64,000 nucleotides of DNA from Paragordius varius. Lineage: Eukaryota; Animalia; Nematomorpha. The notes below the pieces were generated by a model. The model saw only the letters and a program-made list of their open reading frames with translations. It did no database searches and had not been told where the DNA came from. Below are positions 65-31,947 of this stretch, piece after piece; positions within the stretch are counted from its first letter, which is position 1, and every line of letters starts with the position of its first letter. The translations under genes were made by a program, and so were the position numbers. Location: assembly GCA_964247055.1 (NCBI GenBank), contig OZ176050.1, forward strand, positions 4,216,001 through 4,280,000, read 5' to 3'.

Positions 65-2482
65 CTTCAAAAATGTGCCCAAATCTTTGACCGTAATATA
101 ATCTTTCCCTTGGCTCATCTCATTGAATTTCTGTGTGTAATCTTTTACTTCAGAATCTGAAAAATCAACCGCATGCTTTTTGTTTCGAATTTCTTCGTAG
201 GCCTTTAGGCCCATTTGATCATACAAAAATGTTTTGGCATCTTGTATTTCTTGCTGTAATTTTTAAGAAAAATATTAAAAATCCGGACCTAGCCTATTAA
301 TATATAATTATATTAATTATAATTATTTATTATGTCCGTAACAAGAAAAAAATAAAATGTTAATAAAACACTGTCAAAGTTCACATTTATTTTTCTTTTA
401 AATGACGTATAATATTTTTAGTTCATAATAAGGGACTATTTTTTTATGATCCGTATTAAATTTTTATAAAATTTATTTGGAACTACAAAAACTAACCTCA
501 ATTTTTTTCTTATCCCACCCCAATTCACCAGCCATGAGTTCGGCTATGAAGGGAAGAGCTTGTTCGCAAGCGCTTGCATTCAGGAAGGCGAAACGTGTCC
601 TTCGAGCAATAACATCAACCAGGGTACATGCATATTCTTTAACGGCATATTTTACCTGTTTTGAGGTATATACCCATAAGGAGAGAAAAAAATGAGACAT
701 ATTTATTTTAAGTTTTAAATTTTTCTCTACCTTAAAAAAGTATAAGGTGATTATAAGCAAAATTCACTAGCAAATACGATCAAAGTTTTATTATTGGTAC
801 AGTTAACTACTATTCTCTGTTAAGTTATTAGTATTTATATCATAAACCGATACTCAACATGAGGTAGATTTAAAATCTTATATAGTATAGATATTTATTC
901 AAAATGTAAGTTACGTAGTAACTAAAATTTACTCTGTATGACTGAAATTTAATATATCAACAATGAAAACAGTATTTATATACGGACCTCTGCTTCGATA
1001 TATGGGAATTCTTGATGCAATTTTTTCCCTAAAACAGGATAACGTTCGCCCGTTACACCGGCCATTCTTAGGACTGAATAGGATGCATCTCCATAGGTTG
1101 AAGCTAAGTGTCGAGCAACCTAAAAAAACATATTATTACAAACAATAAGTTTATATATCTAATTACCAATGATAAAAAGCGCAACAAAAACAGATCAAGT
1201 GTTAAATAATCATTTAATTAAAAAAAAGATTGTAAATAAATTCATATATATTAATCATATTTATAAATCTTATACTATGTTTAATTTCCAATGAAAAAAA
1301 GAACAGTTTAATTTAAAAATCAAGATTAACTATAACATAAAGGTAAAATCTATTTTGTTTTGCATTTAAAGGTAGGTAAATGTCGAAAATATAGTTTATA
1401 AAGATTTACGACAATGTAAAATGCCCTCTATACCCTATAATCAAAAAAATATAGTTTTAACGCAGCACATTTATGCAATGCCTTCCTTAAAAACAAAATC
1501 ATAAATCATTAGTCATATATAATTTAATATCCGAAAACTCTGAAATTCTAAAGTCAAATAATAACGTAAAAAAACAAAACTTGTGTTTGAATCCCAAAAT
1601 CTTGAACTAATTGAATAAAAAGATTGGGTGTATATTTGTGAGCACCGTCAAGCAAAAGTCCAACCGTACGACTTTTATCCGATGCAAAATCTCTGAATTC
1701 TGGAAAATTTTTAAGTATTGTATCCACCGTTTCTTCAGCCATTTTACGGTACGTTGTCCATTTGCCACCTTTTACACAAATTTTATTTAAAAAAAATTTT
1801 ATTAATCAATTTAATATACGTACTAATTTGAGAATATAGGGGGCAAAACATAAAAAGGAAACTTAAGTTTTATAAATACGTCATGAAAAAGTAAAAAATT
1901 ATAGTCCTATTTTAATTTTTTCTTATATATTTATCTAACTTTTGTCGTCACCCTAATAATAAATTGGTAAACGATCAATTATATAGATTTATAGAATTAT
2001 AATTATGATGTTTAGAATAGAGTGTGTTACATACATCTTTATTCCTTTCGAGACCCAAAACTAGGTTCATATAAAAAATTTGGTTTATTATATTAAAAAT
2101 AGTAATTTATTTACATTTCATTTATTTTTAGATCTATAAAGTTTATTCGTGAAAAATGTTATTTTACATATTTTAATTCAATATTCAGAAAAATAATCAA
2201 GTTATCATTCATTTACTTTATTGTCAAATTTTTAATTTTCCCTAAACATAATCAGCATAGTTATCCTATTTTTTATAAGGAAGAAATTATATCGTCTAAA
2301 AATAAGTTGTATATAAATACCAGCAATAGTTATGAGTTTAGATGGACTAACATGTATAATGTGATTTCGTGCAATATTTTCCGTATTTTGGGCATTAGGG
2401 TCACTTACTAAGGGTCGAATACCACTCCATGCAGACGTTACATCGCCTCGTCTAACTGCAAAGTTAAAAATTTTATATAAAA

Positions 2483-2528
<46 letters not shown>

Positions 2529-5500
2529 AAGTAAAAATAAATCGAAAATTAAAGCAACCAAAAGACAAATATTTTTTACAAATAGAAGCCATATTTTTTA
2601 AACTAAAATATTTGTTTAGTTACGTTTTGTCCTCATAATTTTAAATTTTACTATGTAGATCTCATTTGTTTGACACATCCATATTTTTTTTATTTTTATG
2701 TGCTGAAAAATTCCCTTTATTGGTAAAAATAATAATTCACGAAAATCATAAATTATTATTCATAATATTTAATACTGATTTAGTCTTTGATTAATAGCCA
2801 TTATATATAATTACAGTTTTTAATTAATGAACATATTTACAAGTAGGTTACGTCTTCAATTTCATATTTTACCATGATTATATAATGTATAAAGAAATAT
2901 GGATCAAAAAATATAATATCTCTAAATAACAATCTTTTATACAATATTTATTCCGTATATTTGTATGACATAAAAACTGAAACATTTTTATAATCTGTCG
3001 TAAATTATATGTATACCATACCTTGTAATTCCGGTGTTAAATAATTTCGCACTTCTTTGAGGATAAATTCGATTTCACTTTCTGTGGGTATAGGATTATG
3101 AGTTACCTTACATTTTGTATCCGTAGTGCCTAATATATTAAATATTGATTTATAAATATATATATATATATATATATATACTAAAAGAATTACATAAAAT
3201 GTTTTAAATTTATATAAAAGTTTAGGTAATGTACATTAATTATTCATTCCTTAAATTTCTAATTCAGTATTACCTTTGGGTCATTAATGTCCCATATGTT
3301 CAAATTATTTTAAAGGTTAAATTTGCTAGTTAGATTTGTAAAACACCAAAAAATCTTTTATTTTATAGCTTAGTAATGCGCATAAAAAGGCATAAAATGC
3401 GTATTTTCCGAATTTAACCCAATATCTTAAAAATTTATATTTAGATTGTTGTGGGGTAAAAAAATCTTAAAGGGTAACAAAATATTAACACTTAAATATT
3501 AACCTTTTTAAAACATATAAAGAACATATTTTTTAATAAAAAAAATCCCATATAATTTTAAAAAAATGAATAAAGCATACCCGCAATAGTCATGTTTTCC
3601 CATGGCAAGAAAAATATGACACGGCCATCGCTTGTCGATGGATCCAATAAACCCATACTTTCAGGACTAAAATTAAAAACAGAATAAGAGTAAAGTATAT
3701 TAACAAATTATTTTTTAGATAATTTACCAAAGATTAAGTCTATATGAAAATTAATTGATTTTTTTTAAAACTTATAATTTTTTACAGAATTGGTATATTA
3801 AAAAATTTAAAATATGCCCCAAATTAAAATGACTAATGTTAAACAACCAATATTTTAATAAAAATATACTATAATAGCATAAAAGAGCAAAAATATTTAT
3901 AGCAATTATACTAAACCAAACCTATAATAATCAGGTAGTACGACATGGACCCCTGAAGAGGGGACACAAATTTCCCGAACTGCACCATCATCCATTTGCC
4001 TGATGGAATCGGTGAAAGGGCCAGTAGCATTCACAACGCATTTGGCTGATATCGTGAATTCTTCGCCTGAAATGTGCAAAATATAAAATTCCAAATGGCT
4101 ATTGGTATAACCTTTAAATATTACTGTATATTGAGTTTTATAGGATTTCTGGTTGCGAATAAAAACTCTAAATATTAAAGATATTTGTGCACAGGATGAT
4201 AACTATTAACTAATTTATAATTTTATTTTTACAACATTTATCCTTATTTTCACAATTAATCACTTTAACTTTGTATAATTTCCGTTACCCGTTAAATTAT
4301 CTTTGACCAAGGCCCCAGTTATAACTGATTTATGTTGATTATCTATTATGGCGGCATCAACCTTTCCTTCTTTTGATCCTTTTAGCGATATGTCATCAGT
4401 TAAGTTTGATGTGATTGCTTTTTTTGTTAGCCCATTAACTGTTACATGATTAGCGACGGTGGCGCCATAACGGACAGCTGTTAGCGCGATTGCAAGATTC
4501 ATACGGGCATCATTGTGTTGACCTTTAATTAAAATTTTATTAATACATTTATACAGCAAAATTATTGCAATGTTGGATGTAAACAGCAAACATATATAAG
4601 ATGGCAGAAAATCTTATTTACGCGTTTATTGTCATATATAACAATTTTCCATCTTAAAATGCGTAATTTATTACAGTTTTAGTTATGCTTATACATTGCT
4701 ACTTGATTAGATGTTGCCTTGGCCAGCAATATCATTTCTATTTGCTGCATATGCTATCTGGCAATAATTAATGAAAAGTTAGCAATATATATTTTTAACA
4801 TTGCAAATATGGGAAATTGATATATGAAAACCCAAAGTAGTCGAAGAGTGGTGTCATGATAATAAGTACAAAAGTTCAAAACTAAACATCAATTTCTATG
4901 AAAAGAGATGTTGAACAATGACATATATTATATAAAAAAGTTACATAATATTTAAATTTTTATTAGAAATATTTTAAACAACATTATTCTAGTTTAAAAC
5001 CTTAATAGAGGTAAAAAGAGCGATTATAATAACGTTACATTTGAGTCATGAACCTATCCCCTTTAATTATTTATTTGATTTATATATTTAATCCAGAGTG
5101 ATAAATTTTTAACCGATAAAAAACAACAACTGGTTGAGATGGAATTCACGGTCATAGCCACATTTGACGCAAAAATATGTGGCAATTAAATCCACCAATG
5201 TGCTTTTAGCAGTATATCACTAATTTAAATGAATGGCGATCAAATAAAAATTTAATATTGTTTACAAAACTTATTTCATGAATATAAAATTATATTCTTT
5301 CTATTTTAGTTTTATCCAAGATAAACGTATGAGTAATAATTAGCGGATTTATTAACGATCATATAACTTTAATTGTATAAGGTTTAATATCTGCCTCATA
5401 ATCTTTTTAGGAAAAATCGTTAAATTTATTTAAAATGATTAAATAAAATAATTAAATTTTTTATTGGCAACTTATTAGTAATTATGATTAAAAGTGTGCT

Positions 5501-7229: not shown

Positions 7230-7899
7230 CTAAAAAATTAAACTTTTTTATACTTTTTTGTCTAGCGCGTAATAAATAATGGATGACCCACATGTACCAA
7301 TAATAATATATTTTGAGAGTCGAAAAATGTTTGAAGCAAGCTTCATCCCGTAAAGTTTATTGCAACCATATGTAGGGTTAAAGCATACATATTTTCATGT
7401 GACTAATAACCACAATGTAATTGCGTTGTTTTAAGAAAAATTGTTAGGTTTTTTACATAAATACCAAATAAATTCTTTGATATTTATGTTTTGGAGTTTA
7501 AAAGTATATATAAAGATTTTAATTGCCGAAGATAATAATTGTTACGATTTCTGAAAACGTATAAATAAATTAAAATTTTTTGATAACAAAAGCGAAAAAT
7601 CTTAGCAATCAACTCAACAGATGCTAAGAGTAACAAAATTCTAATGAAATGCATATACATATATATATATATATATAATGAGGGATTTGAGAAAGTAAGT
7701 AGTGATAATATCGAAAAGTCGTATTAGAGTACATTACAAAATGAAAACAAGCATCGTTATTAAATACAGTTATTCTTATAGGAAAGGCAACATCATTCTA
7801 ATGGTGCTTTATAACGCTTACGAGCCCCATTAAGGAAGTATTTCCACTTTGGTAGTTTCTTTTTATAAAGAATAAGTGACTCAGTACAAAACTTAATAC

Positions 7900-7964
7900 T
7901 TTTTTCCAGAATCCGGTGGCAACAGTAGCAGATATACCAGGTGTATTTATAAGTTCAGGTTTAG
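7900..7964 (-). CDS. Candidate upstream exon of GPD2 (KPELINTPGISATVATGFWKK)
   Basis: CTTCTCAG acceptor and GTATTAAG donor on the minus strand; ends in phase 0, matching the phase-0 start of exon 7055-7229. No in-frame ATG in the exon, so the true start is unresolved. Confidence 0.4.
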
Positions 7965-8249
7965 CTGAGAAGAGTGGACGGTAGCAATATATTTGCAAAA
8001 GATAAATTTGATACAGACCCCATTTTGTTCATTCATTGAACCAGCGATACTCAAACCGCGGTCTTAAAAATCTTTTTTCATGGCCTAAAATATTTACTAT
8101 TTTTTGATGCACCTAGTTCAATGATTATCTGCTGAGTATCCCTGAATATTTTATCGGTATTATGGCCCTTGAGACGAGAAAATTTTTGGCGATCTAAACG
8201 TTTTTTGGTGAGACTGCATTAAATAAACTTGGCACTTTTAAAAACTAGT

Positions 8250-11200
8250 GTCTTACATTTATTATTCCTTAAAATTATTTTCTTGAGAAAACACTGGGAT
8301 ACGCATTGCCATCTGAAGAAAAAGAATGTTGAAAGCTATTATTTGTTAGTACATATGGTAAACATGCTCCATCGATTTACAACTGTAAAACATGGTTTAA
8401 AATATTAAAAGTTAGGAAATCAACGGCAATCAGAACACAAAAATAAACTTGGTAATTAAGTTCCACACAATTATGAACTTCAAATCGGAAATCGCAAAGT
8501 AACTAGTAAAATTCTGCTTCAACGCCACGATAAGAAATCATTTTTGCATCGAATTAGGATGGGTAATAAGAAATGGTTTTTTATAATCTAAAGCGGAAAG
8601 ATTGTGATATTTATCTTGCTTAGTACTTCCACCCATACTAAAGCCGAATCACGACTGCATTACAGATATAAATTTTTTGTTGCCCTGTATGTTATACAAC
8701 CTATCGCTAACAAATGCCTAATTAAAACAAACATTAATCGAAAAACAAAGGAATGAGCCAGAAAGCACCGCAGTGATTTAGTTAGGTGACAATGTTAAGT
8801 CTCAGGCAGCAAAACCTGTGAAACCATAAACTCACTTTGTTAGGAAATTTTTTGGCATCCGATGAACTCTCCCTGGCGCCATTTGAACCAACTTTCACTC
8901 AATGGAGCACACCCTCGCAGAGCTAAATTTCATTAATTTCAAAGACTTTTAATGGCTTGACGAACGGTTTTCTGCATTAAATCAATTTTCTAGAATCACA
9001 TTCCTATACTATTTGAGAGGTGAGCAAAATGTGCAGAAGCTGACGGACATGTTTTGACAAAAATAAATAATTGATTTCCCCTCAAAATTACATTTTTTTT
9101 CACTAAAAAGAGTTAAAGAACTTATGAATAAGAATTTTCCCATCTGAACCGCTTATTTTAGGACAGTGACCTTGATGATAATTTACGTATAAATTGCACC
9201 TTTGTTACTTGTTTTCACAGAAGCCAGCAAATATTTCGTTGAAGGCAATAACATCTTGTCAACAGCGTGCAATTTCTGTCTTTTTTACCACATCATCTGA
9301 CGTACCGCCAATTCAAATTTAAAAGGATAGTCGGAAGAACTAGCAAAGTCTATGCAATCTTGTAATTGGATAACATATTTTGATTGTTGCAAAAATTATT
9401 TGTTTGTTGAAATATGGTTGATTGTTGGAAATACTAATATATTATTCGACATCTTTTAATGTTGCAATTAATTGATTGTTGGCAACACCAAAATGTTACT
9501 AGGTAACATTGACTGTTGGAAACACTGAATTATTGGTAATATACTTCGATTGTTGCAAAAATTATATTGTTAATAATACCAAAATGTTATTGGGTAACAT
9601 ATTTAGATTGTTTTTTAATACAATATGTTTTTTAGAAACATTGAAATGCTATTAAGTCATATATTTTAATTGTTATGGAGAAATTATTTTATGAACATAA
9701 TATATGGTTGGTTGTTGGAAATATTGAACTATGTTACCCAATTTCTTTTGTATTCGGCAATCAACCATATCTTTTTGCGGTGACTCGAGCAAATAAACAA
9801 TAAAATAAGTTAAATCACAAAAACTTACTATATAATTGCGGTGTTTATGTCTTTTTGCTATAATATTTGCATGTGTGTTTTGTAATATAAAATTGATACT
9901 ATATCAAATAAAGATTTGTCCATTAAAAATGTATTCAATCTAACTAAATTTATCTATCCTAAGGTTTCATAAATGTATTCAAGTCTAAAACTTCAAAAAA
10001 ATTTAAACAAAATATGTTACCATTGTGTAGCATAATTTGATTGGTGCAAAAATAACTTGATTGTCAGAATACATTCCAAATTTTTCATATTTTTATTTAT
10101 TTTACTTCAATTACTATGACTTTTGTTTAAAATGCACAAGAAAGATTAGCATCCTCTCAAGCTCCACTCACTCTTAGTATGACAAAATTATAATTATGGG
10201 ATATATATTTTTTTATCAACATCTTCAACAGATTGATAAGCTAAACCAACTAAATTTCCATGATCGATCCCACTAGCGACAGCCTTAATCATGCCAGTTG
10301 ATTTGACCATAATTTAAATGATATCTTTGATTGACTTTATATTTTTCAGATGGTTCGAAAATGGTACTACACTGTGGGGCTCCTTGATATGTACAGGAAT
10401 GCAAATGATTGAAAATAACTTCTTATATAGTTTCCACTTCCTGCATTTCATCAAAATAACTTTATATTTCAGCTAAACCAATTTCGCTGTTGAGTATTTG
10501 TGCGACAAAATATCCATTTCTTTGATTACTTTAATCAATCATTTACAATATTTGTTCTCGCGAAATATAAGCATTCAAACTGGCCCCCTAATGATAATTT
10601 TGATTTAAAAATCTGCCTTAAACTCCATATGTTCCAAGCAATGGACAGTGCCGTTACTTTCAGTTTGATAACGAATACCAGCATTAACTTATACATCAAG
10701 AGTGCAAGAAAGGCCAGAATCTTCAGAAGTTGGCATGCCACTTTTTAGCGTATTGTCGTGTTTCTATTGTATTGTTTGCATGTTTGATCAGTTGTTACTA
10801 AGGATCTTATAAACAAAATATAGTTAACACTTAAAAGTTGATCATTATATTTTAAGTTGCAGTTGCTTATTTTAAATTCCAATTTTGTTTCACTCAATTT
10901 AATGGGTTGTGGAAGGGTGATTCGGACATAAAGAAAAAATTACTAGAAATTCTTCAGACTTAGGCAGACATTTCATTCCTCGGTCTAGGAATTTCCAGCT
11001 ATTGAACCGGAGTTCCAGAGGTATAATGGATTTCAATTCGGCAATAAGCTGAAGGTTGTCAAGTTGTGTGGCAGAACGTAAAGACCAAAGGTTGGCGCAA
11101 AGGTGTGCTTGTTCGACAGACGTCGCCCCACATCTGGATTTTGATCGACTCAATCTCTGCTGATCAACCTCGGCTGTGTGCTAATGTGTTATAGGGAGGA
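8250..11200 (-). mobile_element. Heavily degenerate DNA-transposon (probably hAT) remnants
   Basis: GC-richer patches with broken frames giving hAT-like peptides such as IIPLELRFNSW (about 10990-11040) and VVNRWSMFT (about 8350-8385), resembling the hAT TRWNS motif; many stops, no ends identified. Confidence 0.3.
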
Positions 11201-13654: not shown

Positions 13655-13706
13655 CTTGAATGTTGATCCCATATGATGTAAATATAAATTTTCACGTTTT
13701 GTTTGC

Positions 13707-14957
13707 ATGGAGTGGAAAAAATTTAATTTGGATTACAAAACAAATGAACAAATAAACATACAGAAGCAAGGTGTATCGGTAACTGTAATTGGGGATATAT
13801 GCGATTCTTATGGAGAAGGTACCATTTTATTGACAAATTTAAATATTATTTTTAAACCACCGATCGAAACTCTGCAATTTTTAATGAAAAATGATCACAG
13901 TTTTGATCTAATTATTCCTTTAAATCAAATTATCTTTGCTGAAGAAATTAAGGAATCCAATTCCGTATTAGGCATACATCTCCCTAATGCCTTAGTAAAA
14001 TTAGCCTTTGGATTAGGAGGAAGAGTGGACTTTTTCAGAGAATTGCAAATACAAATTGCTAATAAAGCCTGGCTTTTACAAATTGATAACATATCTAAAT
14101 CCATCGTTAACAAATCATTTGGTATACATGGTATTGAATCAAATTTATCACTATTAAATACATATTATAAAGAAAATATTGCGGATTCTTTTACCGATCT
14201 AAAATCTTTACGAAAAAGCGTTCAAGATGCTTTGGAACTATGCAAATCAATATCTACTCAAATATATGACAAACAAGAAAACTTATCCGATGACGAAACT
14301 GCTCTATTTAAGCGTCATTTGATGCAATTAGGGCTCAATTCATCTGCCTCCATAGATGTGTCCAAATTGAATCATTTAGAAAAAATTGCCCACAACATTA
14401 TCTACATTATACAACCTCTGCTATTAAACGATTATAAACTAAGAGATTCCTTATATAATGGGTATATGACTATACCCGAAGCTTTTTGTCGTGTGAATCG
14501 TTCTCGGGGTTTGGATTTAATTTCAACGGAAGAAATGATAAAATCTTGCCAACTTATAAACGAAATCCAAAAAGACAATAATGAATCTCATCTTATTTAT
14601 AAAGTTTTTGAAAATGGATTATCTGTCGTCTGCCTTAATGTGCTCTATGATATACAAGTAGATATTCAATATCAAAATGAATATCAACAATTTTTCGACG
14701 AAAATATTTTGAATCAAAACCAATCATTGCGTCAAATATTAGAAGCGATGGTAACGAATGCCAAAAATCACAACATACAACCGATTGAGAAATCCAATAT
14801 ATTCATCACAGCCGAAGAATTTTCACAAATATATTCTATTCCTGTTTTTATAGCTAGGGATCGCTTATTGTCGGCAGAAAATTTGGGTTATATTTGCCGT
14901 GATGATTCTATCGAAGGATTACGATTTTATATAAATTTATTTATATACCCCATTTAA
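13707..14957 (+). CDS. VPS36: ESCRT-II subunit VPS36/EAP45, single ORF of 416 aa
   Basis: GLUE-like N-terminus (GTILLTNLNIIF, KLAFGLGG), GIHGIE, FTDLKSL, PEAFCRVNRSRGLDLIS, C-terminal ARDRLLSAENLGYICRDDSIEGLRFYINLF. Confidence 0.93.
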   Translation: MEWKKFNLDYKTNEQINIQKQGVSVTVIGDICDSYGEGTILLTNLNIIFKPPIETLQFLMKNDHSFDLIIPLNQIIFAEEIKESNSVLGIHLPNALVKLAFGLGGRVDFFRELQIQIANKAWLLQIDNISKSIVNKSFGIHGIESNLSLLNTYYKENIADSFTDLKSLRKSVQDALELCKSISTQIYDKQENLSDDETALFKRHLMQLGLNSSASIDVSKLNHLEKIAHNIIYIIQPLLLNDYKLRDSLYNGYMTIPEAFCRVNRSRGLDLISTEEMIKSCQLINEIQKDNNESHLIYKVFENGLSVVCLNVLYDIQVDIQYQNEYQQFFDENILNQNQSLRQILEAMVTNAKNHNIQPIEKSNIFITAEEFSQIYSIPVFIARDRLLSAENLGYICRDDSIEGLRFYINLFIYPI

Positions 14958-14997: not shown

Positions 14998-17900
14998 TCA
15001 ATCTTCGGACAGGCCGAATAGTTTGACGTTCCCAGAATCTTTATCAGATTTATCTTTATCATCACAGGCGTACGCTAATAGATATTTAGAAGGGTGCCAG
15101 GCAACAGAAAAAGTAGATGCTTTGCACTTAACTTCATCAACTTTTTCACCTATTCGCATTTATATGTAAATAATATTAAACAGAATTCAATAATAAATTT
15201 GAATAAACACTTTGATTAAAATGGCGAAAATCTAGATTTCTTATAAAATTTATAAAAACAATACAGAATATAAAAAGTGTAAATTCTGGTATTTTTAAAT
15301 TATATTACCTGTTGGGACCCTGGCTAAATCTATAATTAGGTCTTCGGATGCGCTTGCCAAAATTTTGCCATTAAAACTAAAGCTTACGCTTCTTATGGGC
15401 CAATCTAATCTAATGAATAATTTTATTTTAATACAATATTATAATATAGTTAGGGTAAGAAAGACAAATTACAATTACTTTTTCTACATGGCTAATTTAA
15501 GCCTAATATTTATATAAAAGGTGGAGTTTAATTTAGAAATAAAATAGAATTATTATCTCAAATTGCATTTTATAACTGATTGCTTTGTGATTGAATAGGT
15601 GAATTTATATATTTTAGGATAATTGACAATGACTAACTTAAAATACTATTTGTATTAAGTACAATGTCATATAAAGGGTGGAGTGATAAGAAAGTCGCAC
15701 TTGATTTGTAAGCCAAGCGTGGAAAGTTGTGCAAGTTTACTTAAGCCGCAAGTGTACACTTGAAGATCGGTGATAAAAAAACACTTAAGTCAAGTCTTTT
15801 GCTTATGAATGTAACATTTATTTGCCACCCGATTAACGGAAATTATTTGATCATTTTCCAAAATTTATGAAATAAGGCACAAAAAGATAAACAATTAATA
15901 CAATATGCATTTATTGAAGTTTTTCAAACTCACTGGCAAAAACCTTCTGCATTGGAACGAATTGGCGAGTCGGTTCTATTTTATTATCGATAAACTCAGT
16001 TGTTTGCGATTTAAGCCATGATATTGGACAATTTGGGTATCTTTTTAGAAAGACCTTCGATGGGGTTTTAATAATTTCACTGTGTGTGGAGTTTTGATAG
16101 CCATATAATACTGTGTTGATTGCCCGTGTGCATGCATTGTCTGAGTCTTGGCTCTATATCAAAATTTTAGGCTTGCAATACATCTTTCCACCAATCCATT
16201 GGACTTGGGATGGTACGGACTCACTAAAATATGTTTTATATTAAGATTATGTAAGGTACTTCTGTGGGATTTAAAATATGGCTATTATAGGTAACAATCT
16301 GCCACGGGAAACCAAATCTCGCCATATGTTTTTCTAGGCAATTCAATATTTGTTGTGATGTTATTGATTTTAGTAGATCCATCTCAACCCATCTGGAAGC
16401 ACTATCAATCGTGACTAACCAAAAATAACCGTATATGGGTCCGGCTATGTCGATGTAAATTCTCTCCCACAACGCGTTGTTGAAATTCCATTCCACGTTG
16501 GATTTCCTTTATATTAGGCTTGTTTCTTTGACACGGTTCACATGTTTCTAAAATCTTCCAAATCTCTTTCTAAGTTTGGCCAATATATGGATTGTCTTGC
16601 TTGTTGTTTCATCGATTGCGCTCCTTTATGCAGTATGTAGGAATTTCATTACGTCCCGCTGCAAGATGTGGGTATCAGTAATCTGTCATTTACGAATAAA
16701 AGATTATAGTATATTTGAATTTCATTTTTTACTTTCAGGAATTCTTTGATACTTGGATCACTCCAATCATTTGTCCGATTGCTGATTTAAGTTTGTTTGC
16801 CAGTGGTAACATTATCTCATTTTCCACTAACTCTTTTCTTAGATTAAATTTTACCGTGTGTGATACATCATCATCTTCATTTTGCACCTCCACGGTATTA
16901 TCATTATTTGGTAATCTGGTAAAGCCTCGGCTAAATTGTTTTGTCCTTTCTTATATTCCATTTCATAGTCGTATCCCGATGTTTTATAGATTTATCTAAG
17001 AAGTTTAGCATTATTAATATTTTGTAAATTTCGAGTTCGACCAAATAGCCCGATTAGTGGTTTGTGGTCGGTTATAGTTTTAAATTTTCTGCCATATATA
17101 AATGGTTTAAGGTTTTCTATAGCAAACGTGATAGCTTTTGCTTCTTCTATTGTTGATTAATTGGTTTTGGCATCGGTACATTTGCGTGAGGCGTATGATA
17201 TGGGACGCTTTCCTTCAGGGGTAATATGTAGTAAAATCGCTCCGAATCCTTTGTTTGATGCATCTGTTTCAATTAGTATCGGCCAATTTGCGTTATACGG
17301 TATAAAAGTATTGTAATTTATCATTAGTTGTTTTGCGAATCGGAACTCTCTTCCTCTGTTCAGGCCCATGGTCTGGTTGAACCTGTGTTTCTGTGAAGGT
17401 TGCATATCGCTTGATGGAGATTTGGTTTGAATCTTTCGTGAAAGTTTAGAAATCCAAAAAATGATCTCAGTTCTGTCTTATTGGTGGGTCTCGGACAATT
17501 GATCAAAGCTTGAATTTTGTCATTGGTGGGACGAATTCCATTCTTTGAAATTTCATATCGCATGTAATTGACAGATGAAACGGCAAGTTGCAATTTGTCT
17601 TTGGTCAGTTTCAACCCTGCAGCTTCCAATCGTTACAATACCCTGGTCAGCGTTGCATCATGTTCGGTTCTAGTTTTACTTGATATTAATATGTCATATC
17701 CAAATAGATACATATACCTGGTATATCACAAATCAAATTATCCATGATTCGTTGAAATATATGAGGGGCAGTAGTCAACCCAAATGGAAGTCGTTGGTAA
17801 CAATAAAAACCTTAATGGGTAGTTATGGTCAGTAGTGGTTGTGCTGATTGTTGTATGAGAATTCGCAGGTAAGCATCTTTCAGATCTAGTGATGTAAAAA

Positions 17901-20900
17901 CTGTCCCTCGAGCTGTTTTTGTGATTATTCATCAAAGGTCGGGATTACGTGGGAATCGGGTAGCAAATGAGGATTGATGCTGATTCGGAAATCCGCACAT
18001 ATCCTTATTTGACCATTTTGTAATATATTTCGAGTTGGTGTGGCCCAAGATATACGCTCTATGTTTGGATCGATTTTTCTCAGGATATCTAGGTCTAATA
18101 ATGTATCAAGCTCCTTTTCCACACGTTCTTACAGGGGTAGAGGAACTCTCCTGCAGGGGTATATTTTGGGTGTTACATTATTTTTTATTGAAATCGATAC
18201 CTCTATATTCTTTAAACAGCCTAACCCGTCCAAGAACAACCTATTATACTGAATATATATTGATTTATTAGTTATATTATTTATCATAACATGCACGAAT
18301 CCACGGGAGACCAAAAATTAATGGTCAATCTCCCTCGGTTACAAAACATTTAAGGATTTTTGTGATACCGTTCATTGTTACGCTTAATTCAGTTTTACCG
18401 ATAGTCGGGATTGTTTCGTTATTGTATGCGGATAGTCTCTGTGCTACATCTAGTCGTGGTTGTCCGGTTGATCTCCAGCATCTGTCATTGATAACCGTCA
18501 CATCAGCACCTGTGTCAAATAACATTTTTGTATGTATTCCGTTTAGTTGCACGGTTATTGTTGGGCCCATCCCAATTGAATTTGTTACTAACCGAATACC
18601 TTGTTTAATGGGACACTTGGTACGAAAATTCTTTGCAAAATGATTGTATTTTCCTTACCTATAGCAACGTTGACCTTTTGCATTACATCTGTCGATCGCA
18701 TGACGCTTGCCACATCGTTGACAGTCTCTTTTTTGCATGACTCTTTCTTGGAGGATTTTAAGCACTTTAGGTTCAATCAATTCTAGGGATCTTGCCATAT
18801 CTAGTATCATCTGTAATGACACTGATTCGCTTTCATTTTGACCCATGGGGAATCTTATATGTAATTCCCGTTCTAGGATTGGCATATTTAGTCTATCAAG
18901 AAAACATCTCTTAATAAGTATGCTATATTGCCTTTAAAATCACAATCGTCAACTATCACTTTTAGTCTTTAAACATAATTCATGATTGACTCGCCTTCAT
19001 GTCTTGTCGAATTTTTTTCGACTTAGCCATATACTTTTGTGAGGGGCAAAGATTTGGAATGCCTTTGAATTTGAGGCCATGTCATATCCTCCGAGATAAC
19101 CGTGCAACTAAACGGAATACAAACAAAAATGTTATTTGACACAGGTGCTGATGTGACGGTTATCAATGACAGATGCTGGAGATCAACCGGACAACCACGG
19201 CTAGAGGTAGGACAGAGACTATCCGCATACAATAACGAAACAATCCCGACCATCGGTAAAACAGAATTAAGCGTAATAATGAACGGTATCACAAAAATTT
19301 TTGAATGTTCCGGTAAACGAGGGAGATTGACCATTAATTTTTGGTCTCCCTTGGATTCGTGCATTTGATTTAAATTTACCCAATAATGTAATGATTAATA
19401 ATATAACTAATAAATCAATATATAATCAGTATAATAGGTTGTTCTCGGACGGGTTAGGCTGTCTAAAGAATATGGAGATATCGATTGCAATAAAAAATAA
19501 TGTAACACCCAAAATATACCTCCGCAGGAGAGTTCCCCTACAAGAACGTGTGGAAACGGAGTTAGACAGATTATTAGACCTAGATATCCTGAGAAAAATC
19601 GACCCAAATATGGAGCTGATATTTTTGGGCCACACCAACAGTAAATATATTAAAACAAAATGGTTAAATAAGGATATGTGCGGATATCCGAATCAGCATC
19701 AATCCTCATTTGCTACCCGATTCCCACGTAATCCCGATTTTCGATGAACTACAAAAACAGCTCAAGGGACAGTTTTTACATCACTCGATTTGAAAGATGC
19801 TTACCTGCAAATTCCCATACAACAATCAGCACAACCACTACTGACCATAACTACCCATCAAGATTATTGTTACCAACGACTTCCATTTGGGTTGACTACT
19901 GCCCCTCATATATTTCAACGAATCATGGATAATTTGATTTGTGATATACCAGGTATATGTATCTATTTGGATATGACATATTAATATCAAGTAAAACTAG
20001 AACCGAACATGATGCAACGCTGACCAGGGTATTGTAACGATTGGAAGCTGCAGGGTTGAAACTGACCAAAGACAAATTGCAACTTGCCGTTTCATCTGTC
20101 AATTACATGCGATATGAAATTTCAAAGAATGGAATTCGTCCCACCAATGACAAAATTCAAGCTTTGATCAATTGTCCGAGACCCACCAATAAGACAGAAC
20201 TGAGATCATTTTTTGGATTTCTAAACTTTCACGAAAGATTCAAACCAAATCTCCATCAAGCGATATGCAACCTTCACAGAAACACAGGTTCAACCAGACC
20301 ATGGGCCTGAACAGAGGAAGAGAGTTCCGATTCGCAAAACAACTAATGATAAATTACAATACTTTTATACCGTATAACGCAAATTGGCCGATACTAATTG
20401 AAACAGATGCATCAAACAAAGGATTCGGAGCGATTTTACTACATATTACCCCTGAAGGAAAGCGTCCCATATCATACGCCTCACGCAAATGTACCGATGC
20501 CAAAACCAATTAATCAACAATAGAAGAAGCAAAAGCTATCACGTTTGCTATAGAAAACCTTAAACCATTTATATATGGCAGAAAATTTAAAACTATAACC
20601 GACCACAAACCACTAATCGGGCTATTTGGTCGAACTCGAAATTTACAAAATATTAATAATGCTAAACTTCTTAGATAAATCTATAAAACATCGGGATACG
20701 ACTATGAAATGGAATATAAGAAAGGACAAAACAATTTAGCCGACGCTCTACCAGATTACCAAATAATGATAATACCGTGGAGGTTCAAAATGAAGTTGAT
20801 GATGTATCACACACGGTAAAAGTTAATCTAAGTAAAGAGTTAGTGGAAAATGAGATAATGTTAGATCCACTGGCAAACAAACTTAAATAAGCAATAAGGA

Positions 20901-23501
20901 CAAATGATTGGAGTGATCCAAGTATCAAAGAATTCCTGAAAGTAAAAAATGAAATTCAAACATACTATAATCTTTTATTTGTAAATGACAGATTACTGAT
21001 ACCCACATCCTTGCAGCGGATAATGAAATTACTACATACTGGACATAACAGAGTGCAATCGATGAAACAACAAGCAAGACAATCCATATATTGGCCAAAC
21101 TTAGAAAGAGATTTAGAAAATTTTGTAGAAACATGTGAACCGTGTCAAAGAAACAAGCCTAATATAAAGGAAATCCAACGTGGAATGGAATTTCAACAAC
21201 GCGTTGTGGGAGAGAATTTACATCGACATAGCCGGACCCATAGACGGTTATTTTTGGTTAGTCACGATTGATAGTGCTTCCAGATGTTGAGATGGATCTA
21301 CTAAAATTAGCATCACAACAAATATTGAATTGCCTAGATAAACATATGGCGAGATTCGGTTTCCCGAGGCAGATGGTTACCGATAATGGGCCATATTTTA
21401 AATCCCACAGAAGTACCTTACATAATCTTAATATAAAAATATTTTAGTGAGTCCGTACCATCCCAAGTCCAATGGATTGGTGGAAAGATGTATTGCAAGC
21501 CTAAAATTTCGATATAGAGCTACCAAGACTCAGACAATGCATGCACACGAGGCAACCAACACAGTATTATATGGCTATTGAAACTGCACACACAGTGCAA
21601 TTATGAATACCCCATCGAAGGTCTTTCTAAAAAGACACCCAAATGGTCCAATGTCATGGCTTAAATCGCAAACAACTGAGTTTATCGATAATGAAATAGA
21701 ACCGACTCGCCAATTCGTTCCAATGCAGAAGGGTTTTTATAAAGAATGAAATAGAAAAGGATGGAGGGCAGTGGAAGTACTAGAACGCAGGGGTCCGTTG
21801 TCATATATGGTAAAAGACGAAACCGACAGAGTCCTCAGAAAACACGCTGATTAATTAAAACAAAGAATGGAAGGTTCGAGAACAACCAGGCCAGTACCCG
21901 AAATACCAATTCCTTCAGAAGAAATTACCTCTACTCCACCAGATCTCGAAGCCGCAAACAATGAGATACAATCACCGATAATAGACATAACAACACAGGA
22001 TAACAACGCAAGTCCAACAACGAGTATAGACGACACACCTAAACCCAGCTATCTACAACGCCAGCGAAAACCCCGAGACCGCTTTACTATAGGGGAAAGA
22101 TAATGTTAATTTTTAATAGAATACTATTTGTATTAAATACAATGTCATAAAAAATATCTGTATAAATAAATACAATGTCATATTAAATATAAATAATAAC
22201 AATTTAACTTAGGGTTATAAACTTGGCAACTAACTTAATATGAATACCATTTGTAATGTCATATAAATTATCCATATAAATAATAATAATTTAACTTAAG
22301 GTTATAAAGAATTAACAAAAGGTATACCTCATTTTTTATTTTAAAAATATAAAAAGACAAAATATAAAAATTACCGTGATACAACATTCAAACAAAGAAA
22401 TTCATGTGCGTCCCAAATTGAAACTAAGGCGTCTGTACTGCCGACAGCAAAGTAATTTCCCTGTGGATCGAATTTGATGCAAATACAATTTGAAGGGTGA
22501 GCATGGATCATTTGTAAAGTTTTGAGCTCAGGGTAACTGTATCATAATAATTTTAAAAGCATTTATTTATATCCACATATATAATCGATTTTAATGCTTA
22601 CAAAAAAATAACCTCCGATATTTATTTTTGTTTTTATGTTATAAAAATCTATTACATTTGCAAAAAATAACCTTATTTTAATATAAGCTTTTGTCTACCT
22701 GTAAACATTTACGGTTAAAAATAAAAAAGCAAAAATATTTAGGGGATTCCTAAACAATCAGGTAGAACGACTCCAATAATTGTACCTTAGGATGGAAATT
22801 TTCCCATTGCCCGTAGTTAGGAGAAAAAGATTATTTTCATTGTTCCAACTTAATTCGTTTACTTCATATTTGAATTGTTCTTCAGCAATAATAGCATGTT
22901 TTTTTACATCTATAAAAGTCACTAAATCATCCTTGCTACCTACTGCAATGGTATTGCCATCTGGAGACCATGTAACATTAATATTTTCTCCTAAATTTAA
23001 TTACAAATTATAGAGGAAAAAACGGAATACGGTATGAATAAATCCAAATATAGGTAGTAAGGGAAGCTTTGCAAATAAATTTATTATTTGTCGAAAAACA
23101 AAATGAATTTTAAAATTATTTTAAAACGGGGCAACTATAAGAACCTTTTGTGGGAAAATTGGCAATACATTTGGAGGTTTTAATGTCCCATAAGCGAACG
23201 CTTTTGTCGCCACTAGCGGTAACTAATTGATGTGGGTTATGTGGATGCCAACAGAGTTGATCAACAGTATCAGTATGACCTTTAAGAGTTTGTTCTTTTA
23301 TCTAAATTATTTGAAAATCATAATTACCAATTTCTCACGTTCCAAAGCAAATACACAAGTGGTGCGATCAAGTGAACCAGAAGCCAATTTATCCCCACGA
23401 CAGTTCCATGCTACCGAATGTACTTTTGAAGAATGAGCATAAAAATCTTTGGATATATTGTGCTTATAAAAATATTTTCGAAGTTCAATCAATTCGTTCA
23501 T
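14998..23501 (-). CDS. THOC3: THO complex subunit 3 (WD40, Tex1 orthologue), 6 exons
   Basis: Exons 23328-23501, 23145-23301, 22786-22990, 22375-22536, 15309-15409, 14998-15149 splice in frame: AHSSKVHSVAWNC, GHTDTVDQLCWHP, GENINVTWSPDG, AHPSNCICIKFDP, LDWPIRSVSFS, VAWHPSKYLLAYACDDKD, VKLFGL. Confidence 0.97.
15938..19095 (-). mobile_element. Ty3/gypsy LTR retrotransposon internal region (partial gag, protease, RT, RNase H, integrase), pseudogenised; left arm of fold-back
   Basis: Cys/His zinc-knuckle-like CQRCGKRHAIDRC, protease LFDTGADVTVI, RT RICADFR and YQRLPFGL, RNase H IETDASNKGFGAIL, integrase RIYIDIAGP; multiple frameshifts. Confidence 0.93.
19096..22100 (+). mobile_element. Ty3/gypsy pol region (protease to integrase C-terminus and polypurine tract), pseudogenised; right arm of fold-back
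   Basis: LFDTGADVTVI, MKDAYLQIP, YQRLPFGLTTAPHIFQR, integrase Zn motif LHTGH...CEPCQ, purine tract AGGGGAAAGA at 22091-22100; no recognisable intact LTR follows. Confidence 0.93.
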
Positions 23502-23583
23502 GTGATATTTAAATTTTTAAACAAAATTTACACATGATTATAATGGGGTATGCTCCTGGCTTGTTTGAATCGAATCTTTTGAA

Positions 23584-29676: not shown

Positions 29677-31947
29677 ATGGATTCGCTTGAGGAAACAAAA
29701 CCGATTCGTGAAAAATCACCTATGGACATAATAGTAAATATTGATAATGTAACCGAAAATATTGCTCCTGTGTCCGAGTTTGTATCTCATGGCGGGACGA
29801 AACGAAAACGTAAACGCTATCGAAAGAAAAAAGACAACCTTGCCGCTGATCGGAATAACAATGCACAAAATGCACTTTCATCTCCTACATTTATAAAACC
29901 AAATTTTCATTTTAATAAATGTGGATGTTTTTTATGTAATAACTATTGTGATTGCTATATGTGTTATAGAAATAAGACATTTTTTCTAAAACCTTATCGA
30001 TCATTAAATTATAATGCTAAATATCGGAAAAATGAGATTAAAAATTTTGTAAAAAAAGAGCATGATGACCAAACAGATTTAAAAAATGATGTAAGTGAAG
30101 ATAAATTGAAAGAGGATTTGCGAATTACATTTGACGAGGAAAACAAATTGTCACCTATGCCATCAACATCTAAACAAAATATTTCTGGAGATCTTGCTAA
30201 CAAAGAAGAAACAAAGAGGTTTATATAATATTTATATATTTTATGTTTGTTCTGAATACTGGCTAAATAATAAACCGTTATACAATTTTATATAATAATC
30301 CATATATATAGAGATGAACCTTCAAATTTGAGTCCAATTATCAATACCACGGTATCATCAATGGGGCCTAAACATTATCAATCAAGACCAGAATATTCGC
30401 TCAATCATTACAGACATTATCCGTATCGGGGGAATAAAATGCACACATCTAATCAACCACATTTAACTAACGTTCCATCGGACTCTAAAAATTTCCCTAA
30501 TAAAGTGTCAATGTACCATAATATGCCTTATAATATGCATCATTATGCTGGGAGATACGGACACTATCCGTCACATTCAATTCCCTATCATTGGAATTAT
30601 ACTTCGTCCAACAATCGATATCCAGTGCATCACCATTCAACCATCCCGAACACTAAGAAAACGAATGCGGCCAATAGTAACAATAGCTTTAATTGCGTTT
30701 TTCGCAACCCATCACATTTTTATCATTACAAACATCATTTGTATAATAACAAGTATTCACAGTCATCGAAACAACAGAACATGTTTAAGAATCAAAGCGA
30801 AACAAAAGATGACGCACAACTTAACAACATGCCTCGTGAGGGAACTCATTATCCACATAGAAGATGGGGCTCAACCGATGATAATTTACCCAACGGCGGA
30901 GGACCTTTGAAAAAAAATGCTGCATCAAATCGTATCTCAAAATCTTTTGGCAATACATCAAAACTTCCAGTTAACCGGCGTCATAACCGGTATGCTCTTA
31001 GATCTCGTCCTTCAAACAATATTGGTATTACCACATCTTCTGGTGGCACTTATAAAAACAATAAAAGTTTCGCCAGAACAGGCGGTATTGGCGTAAAAAA
31101 TCGTGGTCGAGGTCGATCATCACTCAAATCATCTGCCATTACAAGACGGAGAGGGGGACGTTTTACGACCGATGGAACTAATAATGTTGATGTCAACAAC
31201 TCCAATCAACAACAATCAGTTGTGGTGAAAGAAATTGCTCATGCACCGAAAAATGACAATGAGTTCCTCATGAGGGATCATTACACCGATGAACATGGCT
31301 TTACTACATTCACGCCTTCATTTAATTATCCCTATATGGTGCCAGAAGAACATGAACATAATGATGATATTGTAACTAGCACACTACACAATCAACAGCT
31401 AGCAGATGGTGTGCGCTACACAGGATCGCCAATGTTGGATAACGCGGGTTCAATTTCTCCACCCTCAGATTACGAGGAGTATATGGAGGAATTGTTCTTG
31501 GAAAAAGATTTTGCCGAAGAATATGAATTGGCTCAAAATGTTCGGCTTCAGGCAATGACAAAATCTGAGCTGATTCAAGAAGTCTTGTTTTTGCAGGCCC
31601 AACTCGAAGACCGCGATAGGGAAATGATGGCACTCAAAATGCACCAATCCTTAGTTCCAATCAATGATGATCCAGAATGCGTTAATATGGTTGGCACAAC
31701 AAACACAACAACGACCCGTTCCACGTCTCAAGAAAAAACGCCTGAACCTCACAGCAATATTATGCCTTCCACAACTTTTAGCAGACCAGTTACTACTATT
31801 GATAGATTGTTTAATTCTGTCCATACGTCTCCGCCTGTGACCTCTACCCAAAACATTTCCCCACCCCTTGGGGAACATGACACAAGTCAGCCATTGCCCA
31901 ATGAAGAAATGCCGGATAACGAAAATGCTGTTGAAATTGATAGATAA
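29677..31947 (+). CDS. HEXIM: HEXIM-family P-TEFb regulator with long low-complexity N-terminus; 2 exons (29677-30218, 30312-31947)
   Basis: HAPKNDNEFLM corresponds to HEXIM APYNTTQFLM; LFLEKDFAEEYELAQNVRLQAMTKSELIQEVLFLQ corresponds to the HEXIM cyclin-T-binding coiled coil; a 93-nt phase-2 GT-AG intron joins the two ORFs in frame. Confidence 0.82.

Follow-up and report, generated by a model that had tools for sequence, protein, structure and literature searches.

A single Ty3/gypsy insertion with inverted internal arms and an 880-bp identical core in a THOC3 intron of Paragordius varius

Introduction

The arms of sex-chromosome palindromes are homogenised by gene conversion, and Foldback (FB-type) DNA transposons carry long terminal inverted repeats of tandem subrepeats, which form the element's own ends. 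In maize, read-through from a gene flanking Mu killer has been proposed to yield a hairpin of ~4 kb (PMC3440606). In this study we describe another long inverted repeat, which consists of Ty3/gypsy long terminal repeat (LTR) retrotransposon sequence and lies in intron 4 of the mRNA-export gene THOC3 in the nematomorph Paragordius varius. The DNA analysed is a stretch of 64,000 nucleotides (assembly GCA_964247055.1, contig OZ176050.1, positions 4,216,001 to 4,280,000 of the forward strand), referred to below as the window; positions are those of the window unless a C number precedes them.

A first, sequence-only reading had described the locus as two gypsy pol copies lying head-to-head around a gag spacer. 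The explanation that we consider best overall, with a probability of about 0.7, is that one mis-copied element was integrated normally and decayed, and that its two arms were later converted. The feature is of an ordinary, known kind and is well preserved.

Results

One insertion with inverted internal arms

The whole block at 15522-22317 (6,796 bp) is one integrated Ty3/gypsy element and not two insertions (Table 1). A single integration follows from the one perfect 5-bp target-site duplication (TSD) at the outer ends and from the outer LTR pieces, which have the same orientation. The outer ends of the block are the normal U5 end and the normal U3 end of one minus-strand element, and the TSD has the same length as that of a young relative (AAGTC). 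Of the head-to-head picture, the inverted pol arms are thus retained with their boundaries, but the single TSD pair and the directly oriented outer LTR pieces show that they are not two elements.

Both arms encode protease (PR), reverse transcriptase (RT), RNase H (RH) and integrase (IN), in opposite orientations, and both are full of stops and frameshifts, in keeping with the earlier view that the element is dead. Stop-free pieces, on the minus strand in arm A and on the plus strand in arm B, match aspartyl protease, RVT_1, RT_RNaseH and Integrase_H2C2 in the order PR-RT-RH-IN. Given this order, the TG...CA ends of the LTR, the polypurine tract (22092-22103) and the 5-bp TSD, the element is a Ty3/gypsy (Metaviridae) LTR retrotransposon, and it is a compact one of about 4.2-4.4 kb.

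At least 18 full-length relatives are present in the genome, the youngest of which are 99.2-99.9% identical to one another. One young copy has 213-bp LTRs that are 100% identical, the 5-bp TSD mentioned above and an uninterrupted frame of 1,284 codons, with PR at 264-350, RT at 453-610, RNase H at 673-806, the integrase zinc domain at 913-968 and the integrase core at 998-1073. This intact copy provides the reference coordinates used here, solely as a ruler. The LTR termini were fixed by aligning seven older-type LTRs of the family; the older-type LTR begins TGTTAATT and ends CA (reverse complement TGAACG / TGGAG).

Table 1. Positions of the element, its parts and related features
Feature	Position	Strand	Remark
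THOC3 exon 5	15300-15409 (3' end approximate)	-	search query 15298-15438; human THOC3 residues 258-299, E 4e-14
THOC3 intron 4	15410-22374	-	6,965 nt; GT...AG boundaries read
Left TSD copy, AAAGG	15517-15521		directly before TG start of reverse-complemented LTR
3' LTR fragment (U5-side part)	15522-15716	-	last ~45 nt overlap similar motif ending next repeat
Terminal ~270 bp of unrelated abundant interspersed repeat	15669-15937		replaces LTR start, polypurine tract and reference nt 3667-4029
Arm A: protease, RT, RNase H, integrase	15938-18558	- (sense)	reference nt 3666 down to 969
Identical core, arm A (second half of RT including YLDD, and RNase H)	16927-17806	-	string comparison
Spacer, gag-side region of the element	18559-19091	-	reference nt 968 down to 424; no partner in arm B
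Junction J2: 3-4 nt filler between antisense reference nt 424 and sense nt 969	19092-19095		unique in genome
Arm B: inverted duplicate	19096-21737	+	reference nt 969-3666
Identical core, arm B	19864-20743	+	string comparison
Duplicate continued: integrase C-terminal region, polypurine tract, first 8 nt of LTR (22104-22111)	21738-22111	+	reference mapping
5' LTR fragment (U3-side ~200 nt)	22112-22317	-	orientation of arm A, inverted relative to arm B
Right TSD copy, AAAGG	22318-22322		directly after CA end of right LTR piece
THOC3 exon 4	22375-22541	-	search query 22374-22541; human THOC3 residues 210-264, E 8e-27
Piwi-domain and paired RNase III loci	C2:3353388-3355921; C1:12319268-12327742; C4:9146604-9148774; C4:7780679-7781894		elsewhere in genome

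A repeat search returned 14 collinear inverted segments between the two arms. These were united by a gapped local alignment of arm A with arm B read in reverse, which contains 88 mismatches and 21 indels. All 109 differences lie outside a central core, as had been noted before, when the flanks were described as diverged by substitutions and indels. In total, 537 bp (18559-19095) separate the arms; this spacer corresponds to the portion of copy A that precedes the protease (codons about 84-265 of the reference frame). Its length and its position agree with the gag spacer of the sequence-only reading; a Pfam search of the spacer gave no gag domain, and the gag identity comes from position alone.

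In reference coordinates, copy A covers 424-3666 (19091 down to 15938) and copy B covers 969-4044 (19095-22118). Arm B is an internal inverted duplication, which replaces the end of the 5' LTR, the primer-binding site and reference 214-423. It is joined to the remainder of the element by two junctions, J1 at 22111-22117 and J2 (Table 1). The halves of a query taken from either side of J1 lie on one strand in every normal copy and on opposite strands here. J1 and J2 were each found once in the genome, and the notion that the composite itself is mobile was therefore rejected.

Two separate copies of the family that inserted head-to-head or nested and were then trimmed by deletions, as the first description implied, would fit the abundance of the family and the nested insertions that occur nearby. 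This scenario is nonetheless highly improbable: a TSD pair is found only at the outer ends, the LTR on the right runs in the direction of arm A and opposite to arm B, and the arms are sisters that share private defects (see below). Moreover, LTR elements are not normally inserted in 5'-truncated form, and at least three extra events would be required. Nested insertion of a second copy is likewise ruled out by the TSD, the LTR orientation and the sister arms. A chromosomal palindrome, in which host DNA would have been duplicated along with the arms, was rejected, inverted homology being absent outside the element. A Foldback-type DNA transposon was also rejected, given that the arms consist of internal pol sequence and that the element terminates in two directly oriented LTR pieces.

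The homology between the arms ends at 15938 because copy A is interrupted there by the abundant repeat, for which at least 413 first-look candidates of 88-91% identity were found and other copies of which reach at least 680 bp. As its last ~45 nt resemble a motif in the LTR of the gypsy family, this repeat may be LTR-derived or a non-autonomous relative.

Several further observations concern the family as a whole. In older copies, the LTRs are longer (roughly 330-360 bp), contain a tandem duplication of a ~100-bp unit and have canonical TG..CA ends; the 213-bp LTR of the young, near-identical copies ends in TA and not in CA. A young copy at C9:4967000-4976999 is embedded in kilobase arrays of LTR-like tandem units (about 500-3200 and 7300-10000, counted within that interval). 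Within these arrays, the inverted segments 2513-2988 and 1592-1119 are 99.6-100% identical, and a direct repeat of 1,008 bp is 99.9% identical. A search of a phage collection gave no match and is irrelevant here.

Common descent of the two arms

Trees built separately for the inner flank, the core and the outer flank all pair the two arms as sisters (support 0.94 and 0.97). They also share defects that are absent from 21 other copies of the family: an in-frame stop at reference nt 1201, 1-bp deletions at reference 2644, 3086 and 3100, an 18-bp deletion and a 6-bp deletion. Within the core, the same comparison revealed a private 7-bp deletion and a private 2-bp insertion in the RT YLDD codons (about 17699 in arm A and 19971 in arm B). 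The 2-bp insertion had already been reported in both arms, and its presence in both and absence from the other copies are now established; given its position within the identical core, it does not count as independent evidence.

An identical core of converted sequence

The core of arm A is the exact reverse complement of the core of arm B over 880 bp, and the match breaks off at the very next base in both directions. Both the direct string comparison and the arm alignment bear out the tract without differences that was originally noticed. When 109 differences were scattered at random over 2,621 bp in 200,000 trials, the longest stretch left without any was 383 bp (mean 124); calculated analytically, a gap of 880 bp has a probability of about 6e-15.

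By substitutions alone, the two arms are 92.7% identical to each other in the inner flank, 100% in the core and 96.1% in the outer flank. Against other old copies, they score about 91-92% in every one of these regions. The core differs by 6.5% from young copies and by 8% from old ones, and the flanks by similar amounts. The core has a stem of 0.0425 and tips of 0 and 0, the inner flank a stem of 0.013 and tips of 0.042 and 0.045, and the outer flank a stem of 0.012 and tips of 0.027 and 0.018. The core stem of 0.0425 is thus about equal to the stem plus tip of the flanks (0.030-0.058), which supports the earlier suggestion of recent arm-to-arm conversion of a dead element.

Private mutations are as numerous in the core as in the flanks, and the identity of the core therefore reflects recent copying rather than conservation. 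It is old sequence recently copied from one arm to the other, and this is best explained by gene conversion. Conservation or a low mutation rate is ruled out by the private branch of the core, which is as long as those of the flanks. A third, young copy acting as donor to both arms is also ruled out, the best other copy being only 93.6% identical in the core. At the divergence of the inner flank (7.3%), ~64 differences would be expected over 880 bp and 0 were found; the copying therefore falls within roughly the last 5% of the history of the arms. Mismatches are also less frequent in the outer flank than in the inner flank (3.7% versus 6.8%; Fisher p = 0.0055), with similar distances to other copies. 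This deficit suggests an earlier, partly eroded conversion in the outer flank.

Two points weigh against this interpretation of the core. The branch lengths given above are rough, being FastTree estimates on 800-1,000 columns. In addition, the perfect identity has sharp edges and lies within a repeat, as would be expected if reads of one arm had been used to correct the other during assembly or polishing. We nevertheless consider such an artefact unlikely. Both flanks keep a divergence of 4-7%, including indels, which modern long reads resolve easily, and typical long reads exceed the 6.8-kb block in length. The contig spans 15 Mb and contains no Ns, and a tract of ~0.9 kb is of a size typical of mitotic or meiotic conversion.

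The host gene

The minus-strand exons around the element, searched one by one against solved structures, align collinearly with human THOC3 (7ZNK chain C). Apart from the two exons that flank the element (Table 1), the segment at 22761-23000 corresponds to human THOC3 residues 141-211 (E 5e-39), and clear THOC3 sequence was found in further exons at ~23310-23516, with the likely start codon, at 23119-23301 and at 15001-15159, which ends in a stop. The intron that contains the element is number 4 when counted from the exon holding the likely start codon. Its donor GT starts at 22374 and its acceptor AG ends at 15410, and an arginine codon is split by it into CG and A. The matches of the flanking exons to human THOC3 and the splice boundaries read from the sequence place the fold-back in THOC3 intron 4, where it had been assigned initially. 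Without the element and one copy of the TSD, the intron would measure ~164 nt. THOC3 is a single-copy gene in this genome.

The contig is AT-rich (~28% GC) and belongs to an assembly of 110.5 Mb in 44 contigs. On the plus strand, an intronless open reading frame of 426 codons (13677-14954) ends 46 bp from the THOC3 stop codon (15001, minus strand), in near tail-to-tail convergence. A second plus-strand frame, of 557 codons (30274-31944), lies in a locally GC-richer stretch (37% versus ~26% around it).

Origin of the rearrangement

With regard to the origin of the inverted duplicate, two template switches during reverse transcription are the most likely explanation, and we regard this route as probable. 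The minus strand would have been copied down to reference 424, would have folded back on itself at 969 and would then have been self-copied out to the polypurine tract. At this tract, where plus-strand strong-stop DNA begins, synthesis would have switched onto that DNA and run to its 5' end. The normal U3 terminus would thereby have been restored, with the result that integrase could insert the molecule normally. By whichever route the duplicate arose, the element entered what was then a short THOC3 intron, in the same orientation as the gene, and a 5-bp TSD was made. Later decay brought the stops, the frameshifts and the nested repeat with its deletion at the 3' end. The arms diverged by 4-7% and probably exchanged sequence by intrachromosomal gene conversion: one or more older events would account for an outer flank with only about half the divergence of the inner one, and a recent event for the copying of the 880 bp.

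The reverse-transcription model is favoured because J1 lies near the border between the polypurine tract and U3, because the termini and the TSD are normal, and because a fold-back gypsy cDNA has been integrated elsewhere in this genome. J1 is located 8-15 nt past this border, out of about 4,000 possible positions, and the border is a special point for reverse transcription only. The other fold-back copy is a gypsy-like palindrome of a different family at C1:10863587-10865293, with a length of 1.7 kb, arms of ~800 bp at 93% identity and a spacer of 115 bp. It has TGTTACA...TGTAACA ends and a 5-bp TSD (CAAAC), and these TG..CA ends and the TSD indicate that fold-back gypsy cDNAs do integrate in this genome.

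The inverted duplicate could also have been placed in an already decayed copy after integration, by a replication template switch or by fold-back repair of a break, with conversion afterwards. Some findings speak for such a DNA-level event and against an origin by reverse transcription. The private stops and frameshifts that the arms share outside the core are more simply explained by the duplication of a dead integrated copy; the reverse-transcription model needs a defective template RNA or a later spread by conversion to account for the shared frameshifts. Both flanks have a non-zero shared stem (0.012-0.013), and junctions with short filler or microhomology resemble replication-based rearrangements. 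J2 itself has 3-4 nt of filler and no clear microhomology, and does not discriminate between the mechanisms. The LTR pieces overlap by only ~40-58 nt, as a result of which the insertion cannot be dated by LTR divergence. Nevertheless, we consider a DNA-level event doubtful, although it is the alternative to be taken most seriously. The duplicate ends within 8-15 nt of a border that is a natural discontinuity for reverse transcription only, no host DNA was duplicated, and the fold-back gypsy copy elsewhere in the genome was inserted by integrase. A search of the literature on inverted duplications of LTR elements by template switching gave nothing directly comparable.

Hairpin-forming potential

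As both arms are located in one intron, every THOC3 pre-mRNA contains both of them. For the duplex of the two arms, duplexfold (ViennaRNA) predicted pairing at 2,535 of 2,642 nt and an energy of -4,391 kcal/mol; for the core alone, the predicted energy is -1,613 kcal/mol. Among the 21-mers of each arm, 15% are identical to young copies of the family, and in the core this fraction is 26%; small interfering RNAs (siRNAs), if made, could thus target active copies.

Piwi domains were detected at two loci of the genome, and paired RNase III domains at two further loci (Table 1). The first, sequence-only reading had also suggested that the duplex might serve as a source of endo-siRNAs or as a substrate for ADAR. 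The ADAR deaminase domain (PF02137) was not found in the genome, a weak negative, as the search was exon-wise and control genomes were unable to signal this domain family; an RNA-dependent RNA polymerase (RdRP) domain was not found in the genome search either, which is also a weak negative. If the Piwi and RNase III counts and the absence of RdRP and A_deamin are real, the RNA-silencing toolkit of this species is small.

The hairpin that THOC3 pre-mRNA could form would be a by-product of the insertion. In a working hairpin-RNA locus, by comparison, the pre-mRNA would fold, Dicer would cut the stem, the resulting siRNAs would restrain the young family, and conversion would keep the stem paired. 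The strong predicted duplex, the 21-mers shared with young copies, the Piwi/Argonaute and RNase III loci, the single-copy and presumably broadly expressed host gene and a resemblance to maize Mu killer (PMC3440606) are all consistent with this scheme. We regard it as improbable all the same. The family is young and near-identical (99.2-99.9%, with identical LTRs) and therefore not visibly silenced, the junctions are unique and mark a one-off event, the arms decay like neutral DNA (4-7%), and introns are usually spliced and quickly degraded.

Discussion

Three known processes can be seen side by side, cleanly and in datable form, within 7 kb at this locus: the mis-copying of a retrotransposon cDNA that was integrated normally all the same, the 40-fold expansion of a short intron in a single-copy mRNA-export gene, and gene conversion between inverted repeats. 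It adds to the evidence that gypsy families of this genome often produce fold-back cDNA. It also holds a lesson for annotation, in that what appears to be two head-to-head copies can be one insertion. Should small RNAs be present, the locus would be a naturally occurring hairpin trigger directed at an active family; otherwise it is a well-preserved accident.

Within the same genome, the palindrome at C1:10863587-10865293 is a parallel: here too, part of a gypsy-type cDNA is inverted, and the copy was inserted with TG..CA ends and a TSD of 5 bp. It belongs to a different family and is a pure palindrome with two identical ends, whereas the THOC3 copy keeps one normal U3 end and one normal U5 end and has much longer arms and a conversion tract. 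In structure, the best comparison is with palindromes whose arms convert each other. With sex-chromosome palindromes, the THOC3 element shares inverted arms around a spacer and a tract of identity within diverged sequence, in which the load of old mutations is at the level of the flanks. In contrast to those palindromes, whose arms bear genes and span tens of kb, it has 2.6-kb arms of dead transposon sequence, which are mostly not homogenised and exhibit no sign of selection for identity.

The Drosophila hairpin-RNA (hpRNA) and endo-siRNA loci (Okamura et al. 2008, cited in PMC4710571) similarly comprise a long inverted repeat within one RNA; at THOC3, a single RNA is expected from the position of both arms in the intron. 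Drosophila hpRNA loci are defined by small RNAs dependent on Dicer-2 and AGO2 and usually target genes, whereas the THOC3 locus is known from its sequence.

Maize Mu killer (PMC3440606), the nearest analogue for a possible function, is comparable in several respects: it is a partial inverted duplication of a transposon, its placement would allow read-through from a host gene, and the hairpin expected from this would be of kilobase scale and homologous to active copies. It differs in being a derivative of a plant DNA transposon with a demonstrated silencing effect (PMC3440606). The THOC3 locus, a genomic finding, is an LTR retrotransposon in an animal intron and is only 87-93% identical to active copies. 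By analogy, it could be an animal counterpart of Mu killer, in which a reverse-transcription accident in an intron of an mRNA-export gene would give rise to double-stranded RNA, the derived siRNAs would restrain an active family, and conversion would keep the stem paired; we rate this full parallel as slightly less likely still than a working hairpin-RNA locus as such.

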